A stretch of 64,000 nucleotides of DNA from Lepidodermella squamata (Eukaryota; Animalia; Gastrotricha). The notes below the pieces were generated by a model that ran no database searches, was not told the origin of the DNA, and saw only the letters and a program-made list of their open reading frames with translations. Position numbers and translations under genes: made by a program. The stretch spans positions 1,426,001-1,490,000 of the forward strand of contig JBLDXI010000009.1 of assembly GCA_047495785.1 (NCBI GenBank), given 5' to 3'. Below, piece by piece: positions 50,401-64,000 of this stretch. The number at the start of each line of letters is the position of its first letter. Position 1 is the stretch's first letter.

Positions 50401-51525
50401 CATTAAGTGGACAAATTTCCCCAAAATATGATTTTTAGATCATAAAAAGGAAATTTGAAATCGCGAAAAAAATCGGAGAAATATAGTGCTGAAAGCTCAA
50501 TTTTGGTGATACAGCGATTCAGACCCGAGAAATGATATTTACTAACCTTGGCCAACTTCTTATGCAATTCGGCGACGAAGAGCTTTTGCAGATGAACTGC
50601 TTTTTGTAGGCCATACGCTGCCTCGTAGATGTTTTTCACCGAAGTCGCGTCTTGTTTCGCTTGATCAGCTCCGCTGCAAGTTCTCGCAACAAGGGCATCG
50701 TAGACGAAATCCAGCGATTTATTCATCTCACGAAGCCGAGTCAGCTGCTGCCCGCAGGCGGCGAATAACTGTTGAGAGACACTAGCGCTTGTATGTTTCA
50801 GCCGATTTCGCAAACTCGGCGAAACAGCGTTGGCCGCCGCTGGATTCGGCATTGGTTTTGGCGAAAGAGTCAATCGCTGACTGGCCGATGTTTGTTTCAC
50901 CGGCGATGTCGGCCCAGCAATTGCAACCCTGGTCTCTTCCGCTCGAGCTAAACCATCAACTAACCTAGCACTCAGCAATTTGAAGCCGCTTTCTAGATCA
51001 GTCAACGAAGCTCGATATTCGTCCAAATGATTGTTGACTTCGGTCAACACTTTTGCAAAATGTTGCCGGTCATTTTCCAACTGGGCGTTGAAAGATTTTT
51101 CATTGTCTAGCAAAGGCTTGACGGTTTTAGCCCATACAGCGTACAACTGGTTGATTCCGACTATTTCCTCGTCAATTTTAGATGCGACGAATGCGTCGAG
51201 TTCTTGTTCAATTTGAGCTTTATTAGGCTGCGCAGGTGACTGGTTTGCTGGGACCTCGGGTTTCAAGACCGGCTTTTGAGGCTGGGCTGGAACCACGGGA
51301 GTTGAAATCACAGCTGGGCTCGGGGCTTTTGCGAATAAACTCGGGATCGAAGCAGCTGCCGGCTGTTGAGGTGGATTAACTGGCGCTTGTGTTTGCTGCT
51401 GGTGTTGCTTCTGTAAAACTTGCTGTTGTTGCTGCAAAATGCTTGACTGAGGAGTCGAAGGCGGGGCGCCAAATAACGGATTTGGCTTATTTTGAACTGG
51501 AGCAACTGGTTGTTGTTGCTGTTGC

Positions 51526-51568
<43 letters not shown>

Positions 51569-53032
51569 GAGGTTGAGCGGGTGTAAAAGGTAGAGCAACC
51601 GGATTCTTATTCAAGACAATAGCATCATTTGCGGAATTGGCAACGCTATAAACCGAAATCATTCCCGTACTAAGAGGGATCAGTAAAAGAGGACTAGGAG
51701 GGACTTTCGCAGCCGCTTGAGGGTCGTCGACCAGATTCGAAGGTATGACAGCCGGATGTTGGGATGACAACGAGATGTTCAACCCAACAGGATAAGACGG
51801 TGACGTCGGATCGGCCGGGAAAGTCAATCGACCTGTTTCGTCTTCAACGATCAACTGTTCCCAGCTCTGTTCAGCCTGATTATACGACAGTAACGATCCT
51901 TCTAGGGCGGACTGGCTAACAGCTAGAACAATCCTCCATTCGTGAATGGGCCAGAAAAAGTACTGGCGAGGGTGAGACAAATCATCGTCAGTTCCGTAGC
52001 AAATATCGCCAAATTCGGTGAAAGCCGGTTGTTCCGCTCTTGTATTCACAAAAATAATTTGTGGTTGTGGGTTTGATCCGTCATTTGCGAGGTAAGCTGC
52101 GGCGTAATTATGGTTGTCAAGCCAAAGTAGGTCGCATACAGAGACGTTTTGCAAAGGAGCAATGACAGTTCCCTTCGGTTTCATTCCAGCAGGTTCAAAT
52201 CGGACTAAACGTCCAGTTTTGTCGCCAATAGCAAACTGCTTGCCTTTCCGACTCCAAGAAACGCATGTAACGCCTGTATTCGCGGGCAGGCTCCCTAAAA
52301 CCATCGGACTTTTCAGCAGCGAGAAATGGCACAAAGAACCATCGCTAAAAACTGCCAAAGCAGACGGAACATCGCCTTCAACGTTAGCCGATCCTGCAGC
52401 AGGAGGACTATCCATGGGTCGAATAGTTACCGATAATAAAGTAACATTCGGTGAAGATGATAAATTTATCCGCCCAATGGGGTTACAAGAACCAGCCGAT
52501 AATTCTGGAACGGAAAACAAACAGGCTGATGGACTTTTTGAATTGGCATCGGATCCACAAACGACCAGAGTAAGCTCATCATCGCTCAACAGAAGGTGAG
52601 AAGGCTCTTCGAAAATAGAGCTTAACGATACACGCTTCGAGTCAAGCGATTGATTATTCAAAATTGTAGCTGAACGCGTCGACTTTGATGCAGCTGAGAC
52701 ATCGATTTTATTCGCTTGGAAAACGACAAGGTCTAAAAATACGTGATTTTATAGGTTAAATCGTGTTAAATTTAGCAGATAGCATACCCTTCGAGACTGG
52801 ATGAGCAACGAAAACATAGCCGTATTTGTTTGAGCAAGCAACTAAATTGAATCTTCGGTTCAAACGAGAATTAAATGACGCCGCCGCTGAATCGAATAAG
52901 GAAAGCTGGCATTGTTCGACAAACTTAACGGTCTGTGTCAGAATAAGCGAATTATTTTTAGGCTAGATATTCAACACAATACTAGCATACCTTTGTCTCG
53001 ACAACTCGACCTTCCTTTTTGTTCACCTCCAT
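47470..53032 (-). CDS. NUP214: Nucleoporin NUP214, multi-exon
   Basis: N-terminal beta-propeller (CSNKYGYVF, CVSWSRKGKQFAIG), coiled-coil middle, long S/T/A-rich FG region and C-terminal SFTQYRG. Confidence 0.9.
48538..48692. repeat. Intronic nested inverted repeat (fold-back, MITE-like)
   Basis: Perfect 19-bp IR at 48575-48593 / 48657-48675, a 14-bp outer IR with one mismatch, and an 8-bp inner stem. Confidence 0.8.
51509..51568 (-). repeat. (CAA)n coding microsatellite giving poly-Q in NUP214
   Basis: About 20 Gln codons, mostly CAA. Confidence 0.9.
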
Positions 53033-55742: not shown

Positions 55743-58700
55743 ATGCCTCGTAAAGGTAAAACCAAGGATTTTGATAGCGACGATGAGGTTAACGCCATCT
55801 CTGAAAAAGTTGAGAGTTTATCGGTGAAGCCTGAACCCTCTTCCAAAGAATCTGCAAAGCCAAAGAAAAAGCAAGCAAAGAAGAAAGACGACGATGATGA
55901 GTGGGCCGCATTGGAAAATAAAGCTGCTACTGTAGCTGAACCTGTGCCGAAAGCTAAGAGTAAAAGCGCAAAAGGTGGTCGTGGTGGTGGATTTGCTATG
56001 TTAGATGTCGAGGAAACAAACGGCGCCGACGATTCGGACGAAAAATCTGATTCTGAGAAGAAAGGATCGAAGGACGACTCCGCTGTCAAACGAGAAGTTC
56101 AGCAAGCCTTCATCGACAGCGACGATGACGATATGTACGGTGGCAAAAAGGGCAAGAAAGGAAAGAAAGGCAAGGAAAAGGCGAAAGAGAAGGACCCTGA
56201 TCCTCCAGCTGTAGTCGAAAAAGAGGTCAAGCAATCATTTGTCGATGACGAAGACAGCGGCGACGACAAGAAGAAGAAAGGCAAGAAAGGCAAAGGCAAG
56301 GGTGCACCCGAACCTGAACCTGTACCTACTCCGGCTGTGAAGGAAGTGCAGCAGTCATTCATCAGTGACGACGAAGAGGATGACCCTAAGTCTCGCAAAA
56401 AGTCTTCCAAGGGTAAAGGGAAGGCTGTAAAATCCGACGAAAAAGAAAAAGACAAGAAGGCTGAACCCGAGGATAACTCTTCAAAAAAGAAAGAACCGTT
56501 ACCCGATCGAGAAGGTGAGATATTGAGCCTCATATTGTTGTCTCTTCTAATTTTCATTATGTAGATGAAAAGAAAGCCAGTGTTGCCGCTACTAAGCCAG
56601 CTGATGTAGAAGACGCGAAACTTGCCAAGACTAAGACGAAAAAAGGGAAAGGCAAGGAGGACGACTTGGATGTTGAAGAGCGACCTCCTTCACCGGAGGA
56701 GAAACTGGAGGAAAAATCAAAGAAGGGCAAATCTAAAAAGTCAGAGCCTGTTGCCGAGGCCAAACCTAAGAAAGATGCGTCACCGGAGCCACAAGAGAAA
56801 GAGAAAGAGCCAGAAAAGGTAGGTCAAATTTGAATGTATAATTGATAAATATTGTTATTATTTAATTCAAAAGAAGCCGGAACCAGTGGTTGAAACCAGC
56901 AAATCTTCCAAAAAAGACAAGGCGAAGGAACAAACGCCAATAGAAGACGCCAAGGTATTTAGTTTTAATGGTGTTTGTTTTCATTTAATAACATCCTCAA
57001 TCCTTATAGCCTGCTGTGGCTGCTCCTGTAGAAGAGCCTGTAAAAACTAAGAAAAAGAAGTCGAAATTCGACTTTTTGTCAGAAGATAATGAAACTCCAT
57101 CAGCTTCATCTGCATCTGCACCTGCTACATCAACTGCGCATACATCCGCACCAGTCGAGGAAAAATCAGGCAAAAGTGGCAAAAAGGGCCGTAAAGACTT
57201 GGCCGTTGCATCGCCTCCACCACCTCCCCCTCAAGAAGAGGAAGATGAAGAAATATACATTTCAGACGAAGAAGCTGAAGCTGAAGCTAGAAGGAAACAG
57301 AAACAGCAAGAAGAAGATGATAAACCAAAACTGTCTCGAAAAGAAGAGCGAAGGAGGAAACAAATGGAGGAAGCTGGTCTAATCGCTCCAGCAAATTTTG
57401 TTAACCCTGAGATGACTAATAATCAGGGTATTGACCAATTCAGCATTTCTCAAGCTGCTTCTTCCAGCAAAAAAGTCACTCTCGAAACCGACAACATTCT
57501 TGTAGAAAATTTCAACATTTCCGCCCCGGGTCGTGAATTATTTGTCAACGCCACGCTCAAAATTGTAAAGGGCAGGCGCTACGGGTTGATGGGACCCAAC
57601 GGCTATGGCAAAACCACGTTACTGAAACACATCGCGATGAAAGCGCTCAACATCCCCGAACATATCGATGTGCTCCTCTGCGAACAGGAAGTCATAGCTG
57701 ATGAAACCCCAGCTGTAAAATCCGTCATGCAATCTGACGCGAAACGAGAGGCGTTGCTAGCCGAGCAAAAGCGGCTAGAAGTGCTGGTTAAAAAGGGCGA
57801 TATGCAGGCAAACGAGCAGTTGACCAAGGTGTATGACGATCTTCGTTTTATCGGCTCGGATGCTGCCGAGGCGAAAGCGCGTCGTATTTTGGCCGGTCTC
57901 GGCTTTGACAAGGCCATGCAAGACCGTCCGACAAAGAATTTCAGTGGTGGTTGGCGAATGCGTGTGTCCCTTGCTAGGGCTTTGTTTCTCGAGCCGACCT
58001 TGTTGCTACTTGATGAACCTACAAACCATTTGGACCTGAACGCTGTTATCTGGCTCGATAATTATATGCAGGGCTGGAAGAAGACTCTCCTTGTTGTATC
58101 TCACGACCAAAGTTTCATTGACAACGTTTGTACTGACATCATCCATCTCGACCAGCAAAAGCTTTACTACTACGATGGAAATTATACGCAGTTCAAAAAG
58201 ATGTTGGAGCAAAAGCGGAAGGAGCAGCAGAAAGAGTACGAAAAGCAGGAGAAAAAACTCAAAGAGTTGAAACAGTCCGGTAAATCAGCGAAGGCCGCTG
58301 AAGCTAAGCAGAAGGATATTTTATCGAAGAAACAGCAGAAAGGCGCTAAGGGAACCAGCAATACGGTAGAAGAGAGCAAGCCTGTCGAATTGCTCAAGAA
58401 ACATAAAGAATACGTCGTCAAATTCCACTTCCCATCTCCGCCCACGCTCAGTCCTCCGATTCTTGGTGCTTTCCGCGTTTCTTTCGCTTTTCCTGGTCAG
58501 AAAATTTTGTTCGATAATCTCGATTTTGGTATTGACATGGCGTCTCGAATTGCCGTTGTTGGCCCGAACGGTGTCGGAAAAAGTACATTTTTGAAGTTGC
58601 TATGCGGCGAGTTGCAACCGCAGAAGGGCGAGATCAAGAAAAACCATCGCTTACGAATCGGCAAGTACGATCAGCACTCCGCTGAGCAGTTGGACCTGCA

Positions 58701-59145
58701 TCTGACATCAGTCGAATACCTCAACAAACGATTCAATTTGCAACCTCAAGACGCGCGGAGTTTGTTGGGTAAATTCGGTCTACCCGGTTTTGCCCACGTG
58801 ATCAAAATCGCGGATCTGAGCGGTGGTCAAAAAGCTCGAGTCGTCTTCGCAGAACTCTCCCTCATCAGCCCTGATGTTTTGATTCTCGACGAACCGACAA
58901 ATAATTTGGATCTCGAGTCGATTGATGCCTTAGCCGAAGCTATAAATGATTACCAAGGTGGCGTTATCATTGTTACTCACGACGAGCGCCTTATTCGTGA
59001 AACTGATTGCCAACTGTGGGTTATTGAAGACAAGAAGATCGTGCATTTCGAGGGCGAATTTGACGACTACAGAGAAGAAATTTTGGAGCTGCTCGGTGAA
59101 AAAGTTAGCAACCCATCTGTTGCTGCGACAATGGCTATGAATTGA
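55743..59145 (+). CDS. ABCF1: ABCF1 (ABC50), 4 exons
   Basis: Long K/E/D-rich N-terminus and two complete NBDs ([23 protein letters not shown]; [22 protein letters not shown]), with no TM domains. Confidence 0.95.
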
Positions 59146-59378
59146 AATACTTTTATGATAGATGAGGTGATATTTTAGTTCTCGAAATATTCCAGTGCTT
59201 CTCGGTGGCATGAAAAGTGGCAAAACTTGAAATAAAGTATAAAGTATATTGAACGTCGTGCTTTCTGTGAGCGCGGTACCATTCTAGAATATTGAAATAA
59301 ATTGAGGTGGATTCATTTTTGTCTCTAATTTTCTAGAGATCATTGTTATGAAATTTTGATTAACTGATCGACTTCGCC

Positions 59379-61985
59379 ATGGAAGTCGAATTGAAACAGG
59401 AGATATTTTCAAGCAACGATTCGCCGGTCGATTTCTCACTAAAATTCACCGCTGACCATCCTAATATCGAAAATAATGACGCGGAGGACGACGCCAATAA
59501 TGAACACGTCGTCGGCGAGTCGGATACGGAAGATCCTGAGTTGTTGAATCTCAAAATCGAATCTGAGAACGATGTTGATCTGGAAGACCCATTGGACACG
59601 TTGGCGATTGCGGAGCAAGTCAAAACTATCTTATCCGCCCTGAATTTATCGCAGCGTCATTTGCTCACTGTTGTTGACTGCGCTGAAGCAACCTTGAGCG
59701 TCACGCTTCAAAAAGCAGGCCTTCCATGGCGGTGCTTACAACCTGCTAATCGAAAGGCATATCGAGCCCTTTCAGTTTGGGTAAATGCAAATAAATCATT
59801 CGAGTCTTTTCAATTTGAACGGGTCGAGGCTTCATCTTACGAAAATGCCGACAAACAAACTACTTCAAAACAACTAACCGAGCGAAATCATCATCAAAAT
59901 TCGAATACGACCACAATTTCAGGCTTTGTCGTCAAACGAAAACGAGGACGGCCACGGAAAGAAAGGCCGCCTGGTCAGGTTGAGGTGCTACCGAAAATTG
60001 TGCCGCGTAAGCCGACCCCTATCGACCTGGCTAAGAAACCTGGTAAAAACTCGCCAATCCAGCTGAGTTGTTCAAAGAGAAAATCGGTTCGTGATTTCAT
60101 GCAGTCAGCAACCGACTCCGGTATCGTCGATGAACTGGAAAAAACGGCTGAAATCGACATAAAAACGCTGTCGACTAATGTGAAACAAGCGCTATTGGGT
60201 CGGAAAATGAGCCAGGAACAACTAGCCGGCCGTTTAGGCATCCTGTTACCTACTCTAAATCGAATCTTGAACGACGCACAATTGCTGCCTTGGTCGGCAA
60301 TGAGCGACTTTAGAAAGGCGGTTTTTCTAAAATTAACTGCCTGGCTACGCGAAATTGATTTCAAACCATGTGCCAGTGTCGCTTCAAATGTTTCTAGTTC
60401 GATGTCATCGGATGAACAGTCCAAACCGAGTATTGACTCAGCCGCAGCTGATCTTTCTATGAAAGACGAAGATCTATCAAGCTCATCATCGCGACCAGGT
60501 TCCCGAGCCAAGAGATTTTTGCTCCTTTCACCGAGTGCTGATCGTTTGCGAGACATTCAAACCATCGAGGATATTCCTGCCTTCGCAACTCGCCCTGCCT
60601 ATTTAAGGTACGAAATTCGTGAGGGCGAGCTGGTTTGGCCGCACCCTGTCGGCTTGTCATGTACTTGCCCCGATGACCCATTAATCGACGAAGTCATTAA
60701 CATTTCAAACCGTAAGCGGACTTTGATAAATATGTCGAGGTTAACGTTACTTAGCGGTCGGCGTTACGGGTTGATTGGACCGTTGTCATCGGGAAAATCT
60801 GCGATTTTGAAACTGATAAGCTCGAGAAAAAAGTTAACGACTGTCGGTAAAAATCTGGATATTGTTTACTGCGACATGCAAAATTTAACTACCGAATTGC
60901 CGCCAACTTCAAACGCATCGACTAGGGTCATCGAATGCCTGCGCCAGGCTGCGTATGAAGACCCGAATCTACTACTCAGTGCACCGATACATGGAGACGT
61001 GAAAGGCCTGGGTGATTTTCAAGAATTGTGGTGCGGTGTTCCGGAGGCGAGAGCGCGTTTAATCTTGGACGGCCTCGGTTTTTCTCGTGACATGCAAAAT
61101 TCGCCGCTCAAAGACATCAATCAGCGATGGAGGGCCCGATTAGCGCTTGCTCGTGCGTTGTATGCGGAGCCTCAGCTTTTACTGTTGGACGAACCAACCA
61201 CTGGTCTTGACATTGACGCTGTTCTATTTCTGCAAAGCTATTTGCAACGTAGGTCGTTTTGCCAATTTTAATGAGTCGAACGCGATTGACGATGATAAGA
61301 ATAGAGGCTGGAAAAAGGGGCCTCGGACCTAATTTCTTCCAGTGAGGGGTTGTTTTTGTCCTAGGTCTGCATTCTTATGCGCTAATTTTTATGAAAAAAA
61401 CAGGGTTGTTTTCGCAAGTTGCTTGCTCGTGCCTTGAGAGCTGACCATGTTTTAGCATGACAATGACGGGCGTTTTCTCTAGAAAAAATCATGTGATTCG
61501 CAGTTTGACCTGTTAATTGACCACGGCGATTGCAATCTTCCAATTTATTTCAATAAATTGTCGTCAGATCTTTGGAGTTTGACCTTTATTTTAGTTTTTT
61601 CAGGGTATAAAAATACACCCGCCATTGAAACTAATTGCCTCAGTTTGCTAGAAAACTTTTTTTTTCTGCAATTTTTTCACTCTTGAGAATTTATTTTTAG
61701 CCATGTTTATTACTAGTTTTCTCCACAGTCTGTGTAAAAAAATAGCTGTTGCGCAGCGAACTGTCGAGCTTGACCTCTCAAAAGACGTCAGAAATAGCTC
61801 ACATTCTTCCATTTTATTCAAATAATTTTTTCTTAACCTGTTGAACCTGTTCTATTTTTTCAGGGTATAAGAACACTCTCACCATCGTAACTAATTGCCC
61901 TAGTCTGCTGGAGGCAGTGTGTACGGATGTCATCAGGATTGAAAATGAGCAGCTGATCTACTATCCTACCAGTCACCGGCACTAG
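59379..61985 (+). CDS. Chimeric CUT / AT-hook / CUT / ABCF-type NBD protein (gene A); exons 59379-61248 and 61864-61985
   Basis: CUT-like at 59592-59783 and 60153-60347, KRKRGRPRK at 59934-59960. NBD: [45 protein letters not shown] and last exon RYKNTLTIVTNCPSLLEAVCTDVIRI. Confidence 0.82.
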
Positions 61986-62534
61986 TAAGAAGTTTGTGTC
62001 TGTGTTTTGCATTCATCTTTATTGTTGTTTTACAGCTCCATATCTGCATCTGGCCGTTCTACTTTTTGTTGAATTTCTTCCCCTCAAGTAAAACTGTACA
62101 CGTACCTAGTCATCAGTAATGGTGCGTAATACAAACACGCTGCCTGCTCAATGCGGAAACATTGCAATCTTATAGCGGAGTGACAAATCAGCCCGTGTCA
62201 TATATGAAAGTTGTGAAATCGAGTTTTATATTGTTTTAGAAGATGTAAATATAGCCTTTTCTTGCTTGCCTTTTATATGAGAATTAATTTTTAGCTCTGA
62301 TATTTGCTTGCCACCGGTGTTTCATCTGGTCAAAAAACTACTGAGCAATTTGTATCTGAAGTATATTGCCTCTGGTGCATTGTTGCATGTTTATTTCTAC
62401 TTTTAATCTTTCAAACTGAAAAATTGCTCCATTTGAATTCCTGGTAAGCGATAAAACTACGTTTCAGATTCTTGGATCGATCGGATCTAATTTCTAGTTT
62501 TACCCTCGATAGAATATTATTCTTTTGATAACGC

Positions 62535-64000
62535 ATGTCAAACGCTGGTGGTCAAATCGTTTTTCCTAATAATGTCGATGAATCGAAGCCTGCTAGTGAA
62601 GATGGGGAATCTGAGGCTGAGCAGGTATCAGAGTCCAACGAGGCGATACCCCTGGTAACATCTCAAAAAAGGCGATATCCATCTGACGACGAAGCGCATC
62701 ACAATACGTCTGGCAGTACCCATTCTAGTGGCTTCGGCCTTCCTCCGAACATGCCAATAGTGAGCTCAGCTTTCAAGCCCGCTGTTGCTCGTGCTACCGA
62801 CGCCGTGAGTTTTTGATAATAGGGATCGAATATCCGCCACTTAGAGATGAAACGCTATTTTTCGACTGCAAACTTTGTTTGGGGTATTTTAGTTGACAGT
62901 TTTTTGTATTCCCTACAGCCCATTGACACTGAGTTGTTGACTAACGAGGTCAGAATGATGTTGCGACAAAAGGGCATGCGCCAAACTGATCTCGCGCCGT
63001 TCATGGGCTGTCGACCAGGCAGCGTGGCCGGGGTTTTTGCGAAAGCTCATTTGCCTTGGTCTCAGTTGAATGACTTCAATCGAAACGCATTTACGGCGAT
63101 GGCTAGGTGGCTTGAAAATACTAAACTTGAGGTGGCTACACAAGCTGTTTACTCAGTTACCCAATCGTCAATTTCTCCATCGCCATCGCTGCATATACCT
63201 ATCGCTGTGCCTACCGAAACGGTGTCTACGTCGGGTCGCTCACCAGTTATCACCCCACCGGAGCCTCTGCTCCAACCATGGGCGGTTGCCAGCTACTCAA
63301 AGCATCCCGGTTATTTGTTGTTTCTAGAAAACTTGCATATTGCCCTTCCTAGTCGTGGGTTGGTCTTTCAAGGCGCGAACTTATCTCTCGCGCCTGGTAA
63401 AAGGTACGGTATTGTTGGGCCGAGTGAATGCGGCGCGTCAACGTTGATGAAATTCATCGCCGCCAAAGAAGATCTGAACATTCCAGCCGATTTCAGTATT
63501 GCCTATTGCGATCTTACCTCGACTAATGATGGCGGTGACGCTTGTGATGTGCCTGAAAATCAACGGGTAATTGACCATGTTCTACAACTTGAGAAGCGCT
63601 GGACGGCCTTAAAAGCAGAAGAATCGGTGATTGAACCTATGGTGCGTCGGGGTGATCGAGATGCATTTGCGAGACTACGCTTAATTTATGAACAACTTTG
63701 CTTCCTTGGTTCCGGGGTCGGTTTTATTTATCATGCATCGCTCATTTTAAGATCATTTTCATAGGCGGCCGAGGCAAAAGCTCGTCAACTGCTCACTGGA
63801 TTGGGCTTTTCGGTAGAGTCTCAAGAAGGGTTTATGAAAGATCTGAGCTTGCGTGGTCGAAAAGTCATCGGTTTGGCCCGTGCCTTGTTCGCCGAACCTG
63901 CGTTGTTGTTGATTGATAGACCGACGAATTTGTTAGACGTCGAATCTATCGCCTGGCTTGAAACGTATTTGAAAAGTGTGTCCTTTCTCATTAATTCTCG
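62535..64000 (+). CDS. Chimeric CUT / ABCF-type NBD protein (gene B); exons 62535-62804, 62919-63716, 63765-63975, continuing past the window
   Basis: CUT-like IDTELLTNEV...LPWSQLNDFNRNAFTAMARWL at 62922-63113. NBD: GKRYGIVGPSECGAS, AAEAKARQLLTGLGF and LARALFAEPALLLIDRPTNLLD. Confidence 0.8.

Follow-up and report, generated by a model that had tools for sequence, protein, structure and literature searches.

A 64,000-nucleotide stretch of the genome of the gastrotrich Lepidodermella squamata (GenBank assembly GCA_047495785.1, contig JBLDXI010000009.1, positions 1,426,001 to 1,490,000; called the window hereafter) raises the question of whether CUT domains, known from the ONECUT, CUX and SATB proteins, have been joined to the nucleotide-binding domain (NBD) of an ATP-binding cassette (ABC) protein, and what has become of the two modules. 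The original prediction, made from the letters of the window, placed such fusions in two same-strand genes immediately behind ABCF1, and both genes were found there: ABCF1, gene A and gene B are consecutive on the forward strand, and the ATG of gene A follows the end of ABCF1 (59145) after 233 nt. The architecture of CUT units plus an ABC-F NBD is real and lineage-restricted and appears to be undescribed so far. We consider it probable, with some reserve, that the whole is best explained by a lineage-restricted family, seen so far in L. squamata and one related species, whose proteins unite divergent CUT domains of the helix-turn-helix type with one NBD derived from NBD1 of an ABC-F protein, most likely ABCF1.

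Architecture and expression of the two genes

Gene A spans positions 59379-62072 of the window, consists of three exons and encodes 675 residues. Its first exon (59379..61248, forward strand as for all parts of the two genes) comprises 1870 nt and is one open frame of 630 codons. It was delimited with the list of open reading frames (ORFs), Pfam and the GT..AG joint 61248>61864 in the public sequencing run X1, and its start region (ME.., P-x-DFSLK) is common to gene A and its orthologue P0127, which is described below. The exon encodes in this order an acidic N-terminus, a first CUT unit (CUT1), an AT-hook, a second CUT unit (CUT2), a Ser-rich linker, a family-specific motif preceding the NBD and most of the NBD. 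CUT1 (aa 70-139, 59586..59795) is the best of the two Pfam CUT stretches and CUT2 (aa 259-325, 60153..60353) the other. The predicted RGRP AT-hook between the two units was read off the sequence as KRKRGRPRK (aa 186-194, 59934..59960). The pre-NBD motif (..REGELVWPHPxGLSC..) occupies 60591..60689, and the exon-1 part of the NBD, delimited by the Pfam ABC_tran match (aa 454-608) and by motif alignment, 60690..61248. Since CUT units and NBD lie in one uninterrupted ORF, their fusion is independent of any splicing model. Exon 2 (61864..61984, bounded by the joints 61248>61864 and 61984>62036) supplies the end of the NBD, where RYKNTLTIVTNCPSLLEAVCTDVIRIENEQLIYY aligns to ABCF1, and exon 3 (62036..62072, placed by its joint in X1 and by translation) adds a brief C-terminal tail with the stop codon. 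These two exons are an addition to the original prediction and complete the NBD; both are backed by spliced contigs, as is the stop codon, and the 3' untranslated region reaches at least ~62468 (X1 contig 62048-62468).

Gene B begins with an acidic, Ser-rich exon (62535..62804, an ORF followed by the GT..AG joint 62804>62919 in X1) in which no domain was recognised and no Pfam match was found. Exon 2 (62919..63716), placed by Pfam and by BLASTP to gene A, holds one CUT unit (~62922-63128) and, from ~63318, the first half of the NBD. After an intron of 48 nt, which interrupts the NBD, exon 3 (63765..63976; joint 63715>63764 in X1, cut +1) encodes its second half (AAEAKARQLLTGLGF..LLLIDRPTNLLD). 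The donor of exon 3 is in phase 1 and at the same position as that of gene A intron 1, and the gene extends past 64000. Gene B aligns to gene A over CUT2 and the NBD (BLASTP E 4e-15) and is an old paralogue of it; we refer to the corresponding proteins as A type and B type.

Two public runs were used to follow splicing, namely X1 (2015), which is flagged only as probable RNA, and a second run, X2. Contigs of X1 carry four GT..AG joints (61248>61864, 61984>62036, 62804>62919 and 63715>63764). X2 crosses the same introns at even depth and with zero joints. As the joints occur only in X1 and the depth of X1 falls in gene A intron 1, X1 was read as RNA and X2 as DNA. Genes A and B are both transcribed, and their splicing agrees with the prediction. 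Read-through from ABCF1, or a transcript fusing it to gene A, was considered and rejected, no joint connecting the two genes.

Three further observations concern the transcribed region of gene A. Its last exon shows in X1 an in-frame difference of 6 nt at 62042-62047 (one copy of a near-tandem ATCTGC/ATCTGG pair), which takes two residues out of the C-terminal tail. Intron 1 measures 615 nt (52 nt in the orthologue) and holds a decayed duplicate at 61595-61652 on the forward strand; this direct repeat (D1) is 81% identical to 61855-61912, i.e. the splice acceptor and the first ~50 nt of exon 2, and is bypassed by the spliced contig. In the same intron, at 61268-61811, several joints between opposite strands were seen in X1 contigs of depth 2-6. 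They are probably palindromic artefacts of library or assembly, or reflect a small inverted repeat; only one inverted pair behind them was found, of 16 nt.

The CUT-like units and the nucleotide-binding domain

The proposal that the N-terminal units are CUT domains was borne out by profile and by fold. Against the Pfam CUT model (PF02376, cut-off 24.4 bits) gene A scored 44.2 bits in two stretches and the orthologue P0127 39.2 bits. The exons of gene B were scanned separately by Pfam, which put its scores slightly under threshold: its one CUT unit, which aligns to the units of gene A, reached 23.4-23.8 bits. A CUT profile built from three units was searched exhaustively against 1.84 billion representative proteins and gave 332 matches, the best 150 of which were listed. 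It recovered true CUX/SATB-type proteins such as Branchiostoma cut-like 1 (E 3e-20), and because genuine CUX-type proteins are among its matches, the CUT homology is confirmed reciprocally. The AlphaFold model of gene A CUT2 (predicted local distance difference test, pLDDT, 81) has four predicted helices and resembles most closely the CUT domains of CUX2 (1wh8 and 1x2l; TMq 0.72, root-mean-square deviation 1.7-1.8 Å) and ONECUT2 (8t0f; 0.68), the Foldseek E-values being weak, which is to be expected of a helix-turn-helix domain of 80 residues. Profile and structural matches were thereby both obtained. Four of the five family units retain the Gln that matches SATB1 Gln390 (CUT1 of the orthologue has Glu), and four retain Pro-Trp (CUT2 of the orthologue has Thr-Trp).

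The AT-hook, an Arg-Gly-Arg-Pro core with basic flanks, is a motif of the DNA minor groove. The hook of gene A is not reported by the short AT_hook model of Pfam; the orthologue has two, KRKRGRPPG and KRKRGRPPK. On the level of sequence these conserved hooks are the best argument that A-type proteins contact DNA. No homeodomain was found by Pfam in exon 1 of gene A, which covers 630 of the 675 residues, in agreement with the original prediction; what follows exon 1 aligns to the end of ABCF1 NBD1 or forms a tail of 13 residues. The possibility that gene A is an ordinary CUT homeobox gene whose homeodomain exon escaped notice was rejected, because the stop codon is backed by RNA and no homeodomain was found.

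The C-terminal domain of gene A scored 47.2 bits against Pfam ABC_tran (cut-off 25), and the NBD of gene B, split over exons 2 and 3, scored 23.4 and 19.5 bits. That both domains align to ABCF1 NBD1 held true, with identities to NBD1 of the adjacent ABCF1 of 36% for gene A and 40% for gene B. For the portion of the gene A NBD encoded by exon 1, the AlphaFold model has a mean pLDDT of 66 (~80 in the core), and its top match in the PDB is human ABCF1 (5zxd, E 3e-9, 33-34% identity). ABC-F proteins have two NBDs in tandem, a linker between them (ABC_tran_Xtn / PtIM) and no transmembrane domain, whereas gene A terminates after a single NBD, with neither a second NBD nor the linker.

The motifs of this NBD were compared with those of the neighbouring ABCF1. 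Walker A reads GPNGYGKT in ABCF1, GPLSSGKS in gene A, GPSGCGKS in the orthologue and GPSECGAS in gene B, in which Lys is replaced by Ala. Walker B is LLLLDEPT in ABCF1 and gene A, LILDEPT in the orthologue and LLLIDRPT in gene B, a change of Glu to Arg. The Q-loop (CEQE in ABCF1, VDQQ in the orthologue) has lost its Gln in gene A (CDMQ) and gene B (CDLT). The signature motif, FSGGW in ABCF1, is lost in all three proteins (INQRW in gene A, VPLRV in the orthologue and LSLRG in gene B), and the H-loop SHD of ABCF1 is TNC in gene A and the orthologue, with Asn in place of His; in gene B it lies beyond the window. From the established ABC mechanism, a lone NBD that has neither signature motif nor H-loop should be unable to support ATP hydrolysis in the canonical sandwich dimer. 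The description of the domain as an ATPase domain derived from ABCF1 consequently has to be withdrawn as regards ATPase, given the loss of the signature in the three proteins, of the H-loop His in gene A and the orthologue and, in gene B, also of the Walker A Lys and the Walker B Glu. Judged by its motifs, the family NBD does not function as an ordinary ATPase, and ATP hydrolysis as in ABC-F proteins would not be expected of gene A. The A type may still bind nucleotide, as it retains Walker A Lys and Walker B Asp-Glu; the B type probably cannot.

Relatives, selection and origin

Among the best 150 matches of the CUT profile only one cluster also carries an NBD, namely P0127 (cluster-mate P0271), so that no CUT protein in this set other than the gene A orthologue has an ABC NBD as partner. 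P0127/P0271 come from three metagenome assemblies in ENA, and the second species is seen only in such contigs. They are collinear with gene A (40% identity over 620 aa), P0127 having CUT1, two AT-hooks, CUT2, the REGELVWPHPxGLSC pre-NBD motif and the NBD in this order. The orthologue starts 182 nt 3' of an ABCF1 (contig L001) sharing 81% identity with that of the window, and both introns of gene A recur in it at identical positions and phases. Downstream of the orthologue there is no B-type gene; instead, about five acyl-CoA thioesterase (4HBT_3) genes stand in tandem (L001 4609-10511; L002 3416-9318), showing that the neighbourhood downstream of gene A is not conserved.

Other searches gave no further member. 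A word-indexed protein search with gene A, with the CUT region alone or with a family profile returned ABC-F proteins only or nothing, in a search so insensitive that the profile missed P0127, which is present there. A feature search of the ESM Atlas returned generic bacterial ABC clusters only, and two scans of Joint Genome Institute (JGI) metagenome contigs for peptide patterns specific to the family found no relative. Nor was a description of CUT plus ABC NBD found in the literature, including the L. squamata genome paper, and the statement that no such architecture has been described was upheld to this extent.

The segments of gene A and its orthologue are conserved to different degrees. 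Identity is 46% in CUT1, 45% in CUT2, 52% in the NBD and 64% in the pre-NBD motif, the best-conserved segment, compared with 23% in the spacer between the CUT units and 34% in the Ser-rich linker. Among the listed differences between the window and X1 or X2, a subset beyond which there are 44 further sites, the ratio of synonymous to non-synonymous changes was 12:2 in gene A, 6:1 in gene B and 10:0 in ABCF1. The synonymous bias, the conservation by segment and the intact frames together argue for purifying selection on both domains, as had been proposed; by these measures the family is under purifying selection.

The CUT profile also returned, as its top-ranked matches (E down to 3e-35), a set of metagenomic proteins with 3-7 Pfam CUT stretches (P0121-P0126, P0128, P0129, P0131; loci L005 and L006, JGI metagenome 3300045973). 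Like the family they have neither a homeodomain nor the Ser-Gln-Gly (SQG) residues discussed below, and they differ from it in having no NBD and many more CUT repeats. At least one of them is of animal origin, since a Cys-loop channel gene adjoins it on the contig. By profile comparison they are the nearest relatives of the family CUT units; they may constitute an undescribed multi-CUT family and may represent the lineage that donated these units.

For the NBD, a maximum-likelihood tree of NBD1 regions grouped gene A, its orthologue and gene B into a clade (97/93) that is, with moderate support, sister to the ABCF1 clade (90/84). In the approximately unbiased (AU) test, placement of the family with ABCF3 was rejected (p 0.027) and nesting with the lineage's own ABCF1 was not (p 0.38). 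A single animal-type sequence, P0272, served as ABCF2 reference; it had been considered as a relative of the B type and was rejected as such, since it proved to be exon 1 of a normal ABCF2-like gene. Genes A and B have in common a phase-1 intron after ..YLQ/..YLK, which the local ABCF1 does not have. This shared intron and the shared CUT unit favour one fusion followed by duplication, and the adjacency to ABCF1 kept in two species supports an origin by tandem duplication.

The ABCF1 gene itself lies at 55743..59145 on the forward strand (start approximate) and scored 164.6 bits with Pfam ABC_tran in two stretches, in addition to ABC_tran_Xtn. Both of its NBDs, NBD1 at ~57466-58215 and NBD2 at ~58423-59115, are inside the last large exon (~57016-59145). 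The gap between ABCF1 and the A-type gene is very short in both species (59146-59378, 233 nt, in the window; L001 1830-2011, 182 nt), a polypyrimidine-AG acceptor stands just 5' of each of the two ATGs, and the arrangement looks operon-like. Further upstream, at 50403-52661 on the reverse strand, a large ORF encodes a beta-propeller of the NUP159/NUP214 type (Pfam 49 bits), a run of 23 glutamines and a middle part rich in Gln and Pro; the gene is probably orthologous to NUP214. The GC content of the window is ~44%, that of the L. squamata genome 43% (PMC11660948).

Function of the family

In the mechanism we propose, the N-terminal half with its CUT-like domains and RGRP AT-hooks would tether a nuclear protein to DNA or chromatin. 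Its DNA specificity would probably be non-canonical, perhaps directed to AT-rich or structural features, because the usual base-reading Gln-Gly pair is missing. The NBD would be a folded, non-catalytic module and no longer an ATPase motor; that of the A type may bind nucleotide, and that of the B type would act as a protein-protein interaction surface only, since it probably cannot bind nucleotide. Such a protein could be a regulator of chromatin or transcription. Most likely, the family arose when a tandem partial duplicate of ABCF1 gained a CUT exon, and duplication into A and B types would have preceded the split of the two sampled species.

Several findings weigh against this picture. None of the five family units has Ser/Thr-Gln-Gly at the start of helix 3; these columns, which carry SQG in the CUX-type matches, read LLP, AEA, RPG, PSN and TEE instead. 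Among the CUT domains compared in the study of SATB1 the Gln-Gly pair is perfectly conserved, with Thr or Ser ahead of it (Thr401-Gln402-Gly403 in SATB1), and mutating the Gln or the Gly lowers DNA binding about 50-fold or 10-fold, respectively (PMC1976457). With these residues lost, canonical sequence-specific reading of DNA by the family units is not to be assumed, and the original designation of the units as DNA-binding domains is not supported in this sense. Gene B has no AT-hook within the portion visible in the window. No single RNA contig covers both CUT and NBD, the contigs of X1 being interrupted at heterozygous sites, and the RNA nature of X1 is a guess from the flagging of the run. 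As to descent, the NBD of gene B is nearer to ABCF1 (40%) than to the NBD of gene A (about 25%), the clade of A and B in the NBD tree unites long branches, and the AU test did not reject placement with the ABCF2-like group (p 0.15). Of the claim of an ABCF1 duplicate, the position beside ABCF1, the rejection of ABCF3 and the linkage in two species thus hold, and exclusive descent from ABCF1 does not follow from the tree, which permits nesting in the lineage's own ABCF1 and an ABCF2 placement alike; derivation of the family NBD from ABCF1 is likely, not proven.

A different explanation, which we regard as unlikely and nonetheless worth weighing in full, is that the CUT-like domains no longer bind DNA and that the protein works with ABCF1 or the translation machinery, e.g. 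as a regulator or decoy whose NBD1-like domain pairs with NBD2 of ABCF1, produced from the same transcription unit as ABCF1. The loss of the base-reading residues (PMC1976457) speaks for it, as do the tight linkage to ABCF1 in two species and the conservation of the NBD and the pre-NBD motif, which exceeds that of the rest of the protein. It would also fit that gene A keeps the Walker A/B half of one composite ATP site and has lost the signature half. A composite site half lost in this way resembles the degenerate sites of asymmetric ABC dimers. Such a function would, however, leave unexplained why the RGRP AT-hooks are conserved in gene A and doubled in the orthologue, and why the SATB1 Gln390 equivalent and Pro-Trp each persist in most CUT units. 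Moreover, gene B no longer has the Walker A Lys, which excludes ATP-dependent pairing as the function of the family as a whole, and there is no inter-NBD linker such as ABC-F proteins use on the ribosome.

It is very improbable that the NBD has remained an active ATPase, one that would form dimers upon ATP binding and power a transaction on DNA as SMC, Rad50 or UvrA do. DNA-acting ABC ATPases do exist, and Walker A (GxxxxGKS) and the Walker B Asp-Glu are kept in gene A and the orthologue. Nevertheless, all three proteins have lost the signature motif, which a dimer needs for clamping ATP; the H-loop His is replaced in the two A-type proteins, the Q-loop Gln is gone from genes A and B, and gene B has in addition neither Walker A Lys nor catalytic Glu. 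Hardly credible, and already largely refuted, is the notion that genes A and B serve no function themselves and are chimeric ABCF1 duplicates in decay or evolving neutrally, or else a product of chimeric assembly: fast evolution (40% identity between orthologues compared with 81% for ABCF1), degenerate catalytic motifs and the decayed exon duplicate in intron 1 would suit it, but in two species the frames are uninterrupted and collinear and the introns conserved, variation is biased to synonymous sites, domains are more conserved than linkers, spliced transcripts exist, and an assembly chimera is ruled out by the same single-ORF architecture in three independent metagenome assemblies and an independent DNA run.

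Set beside known systems, the favoured family of chromatin-tethered proteins shares features with each of its two sources. With the CUT-class homeodomain proteins (ONECUT, CUX, SATB, COMPASS) it has in common the CUT profile and five-helix fold, and tandem CUT units as in gene A occur in CUX and SATB. In these proteins a homeodomain lies C-terminal to CUT and the Ser/Thr-Gln-Gly base-contacting residues are present, whereas gene A has no homeodomain and the family units do not have these residues. SATB combines CUT domains and AT-rich DNA binding with a separate oligomerisation domain, to which the family NBD might be analogous. On the side of the ABC-F factors, the family NBD is homologous to NBD1 and, in the best tree, nearest to the clade of ABCF1 (ABC50), a gene that gene A adjoins. 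The transcription role reported for mammalian ABCF1 uses its N-terminal low-complexity domain (PMC8555894), and this is not the portion kept in the gene family. A more far-reaching possibility, to which we assign little probability, is the exaptation of a translation-factor NBD in a novel class of proteins bound to chromatin. The A-type NBD, binding nucleotide and not hydrolysing it, would then sense ATP or pair with ABCF1, and operon-like co-expression with ABCF1 would link gene regulation in gastrotrichs directly to the condition of the translation machinery.

The family is known here from sequence, transcripts and models, and the reach of the finding is limited by a taxonomic range that is narrow so far. 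Within it, two old and well-studied modules that were not known together form a new protein architecture that is expressed and conserved. CUT domains are able to persist without a homeodomain and without the canonical base-reading residues, and an ABC NBD is able to stay under selection after the loss of its catalytic motifs. The likely birth of a gene by tandem partial duplication and domain capture can be traced beside the putative parent gene, and the poorly studied gastrotrichs gain a lineage-specific family of candidate regulators.

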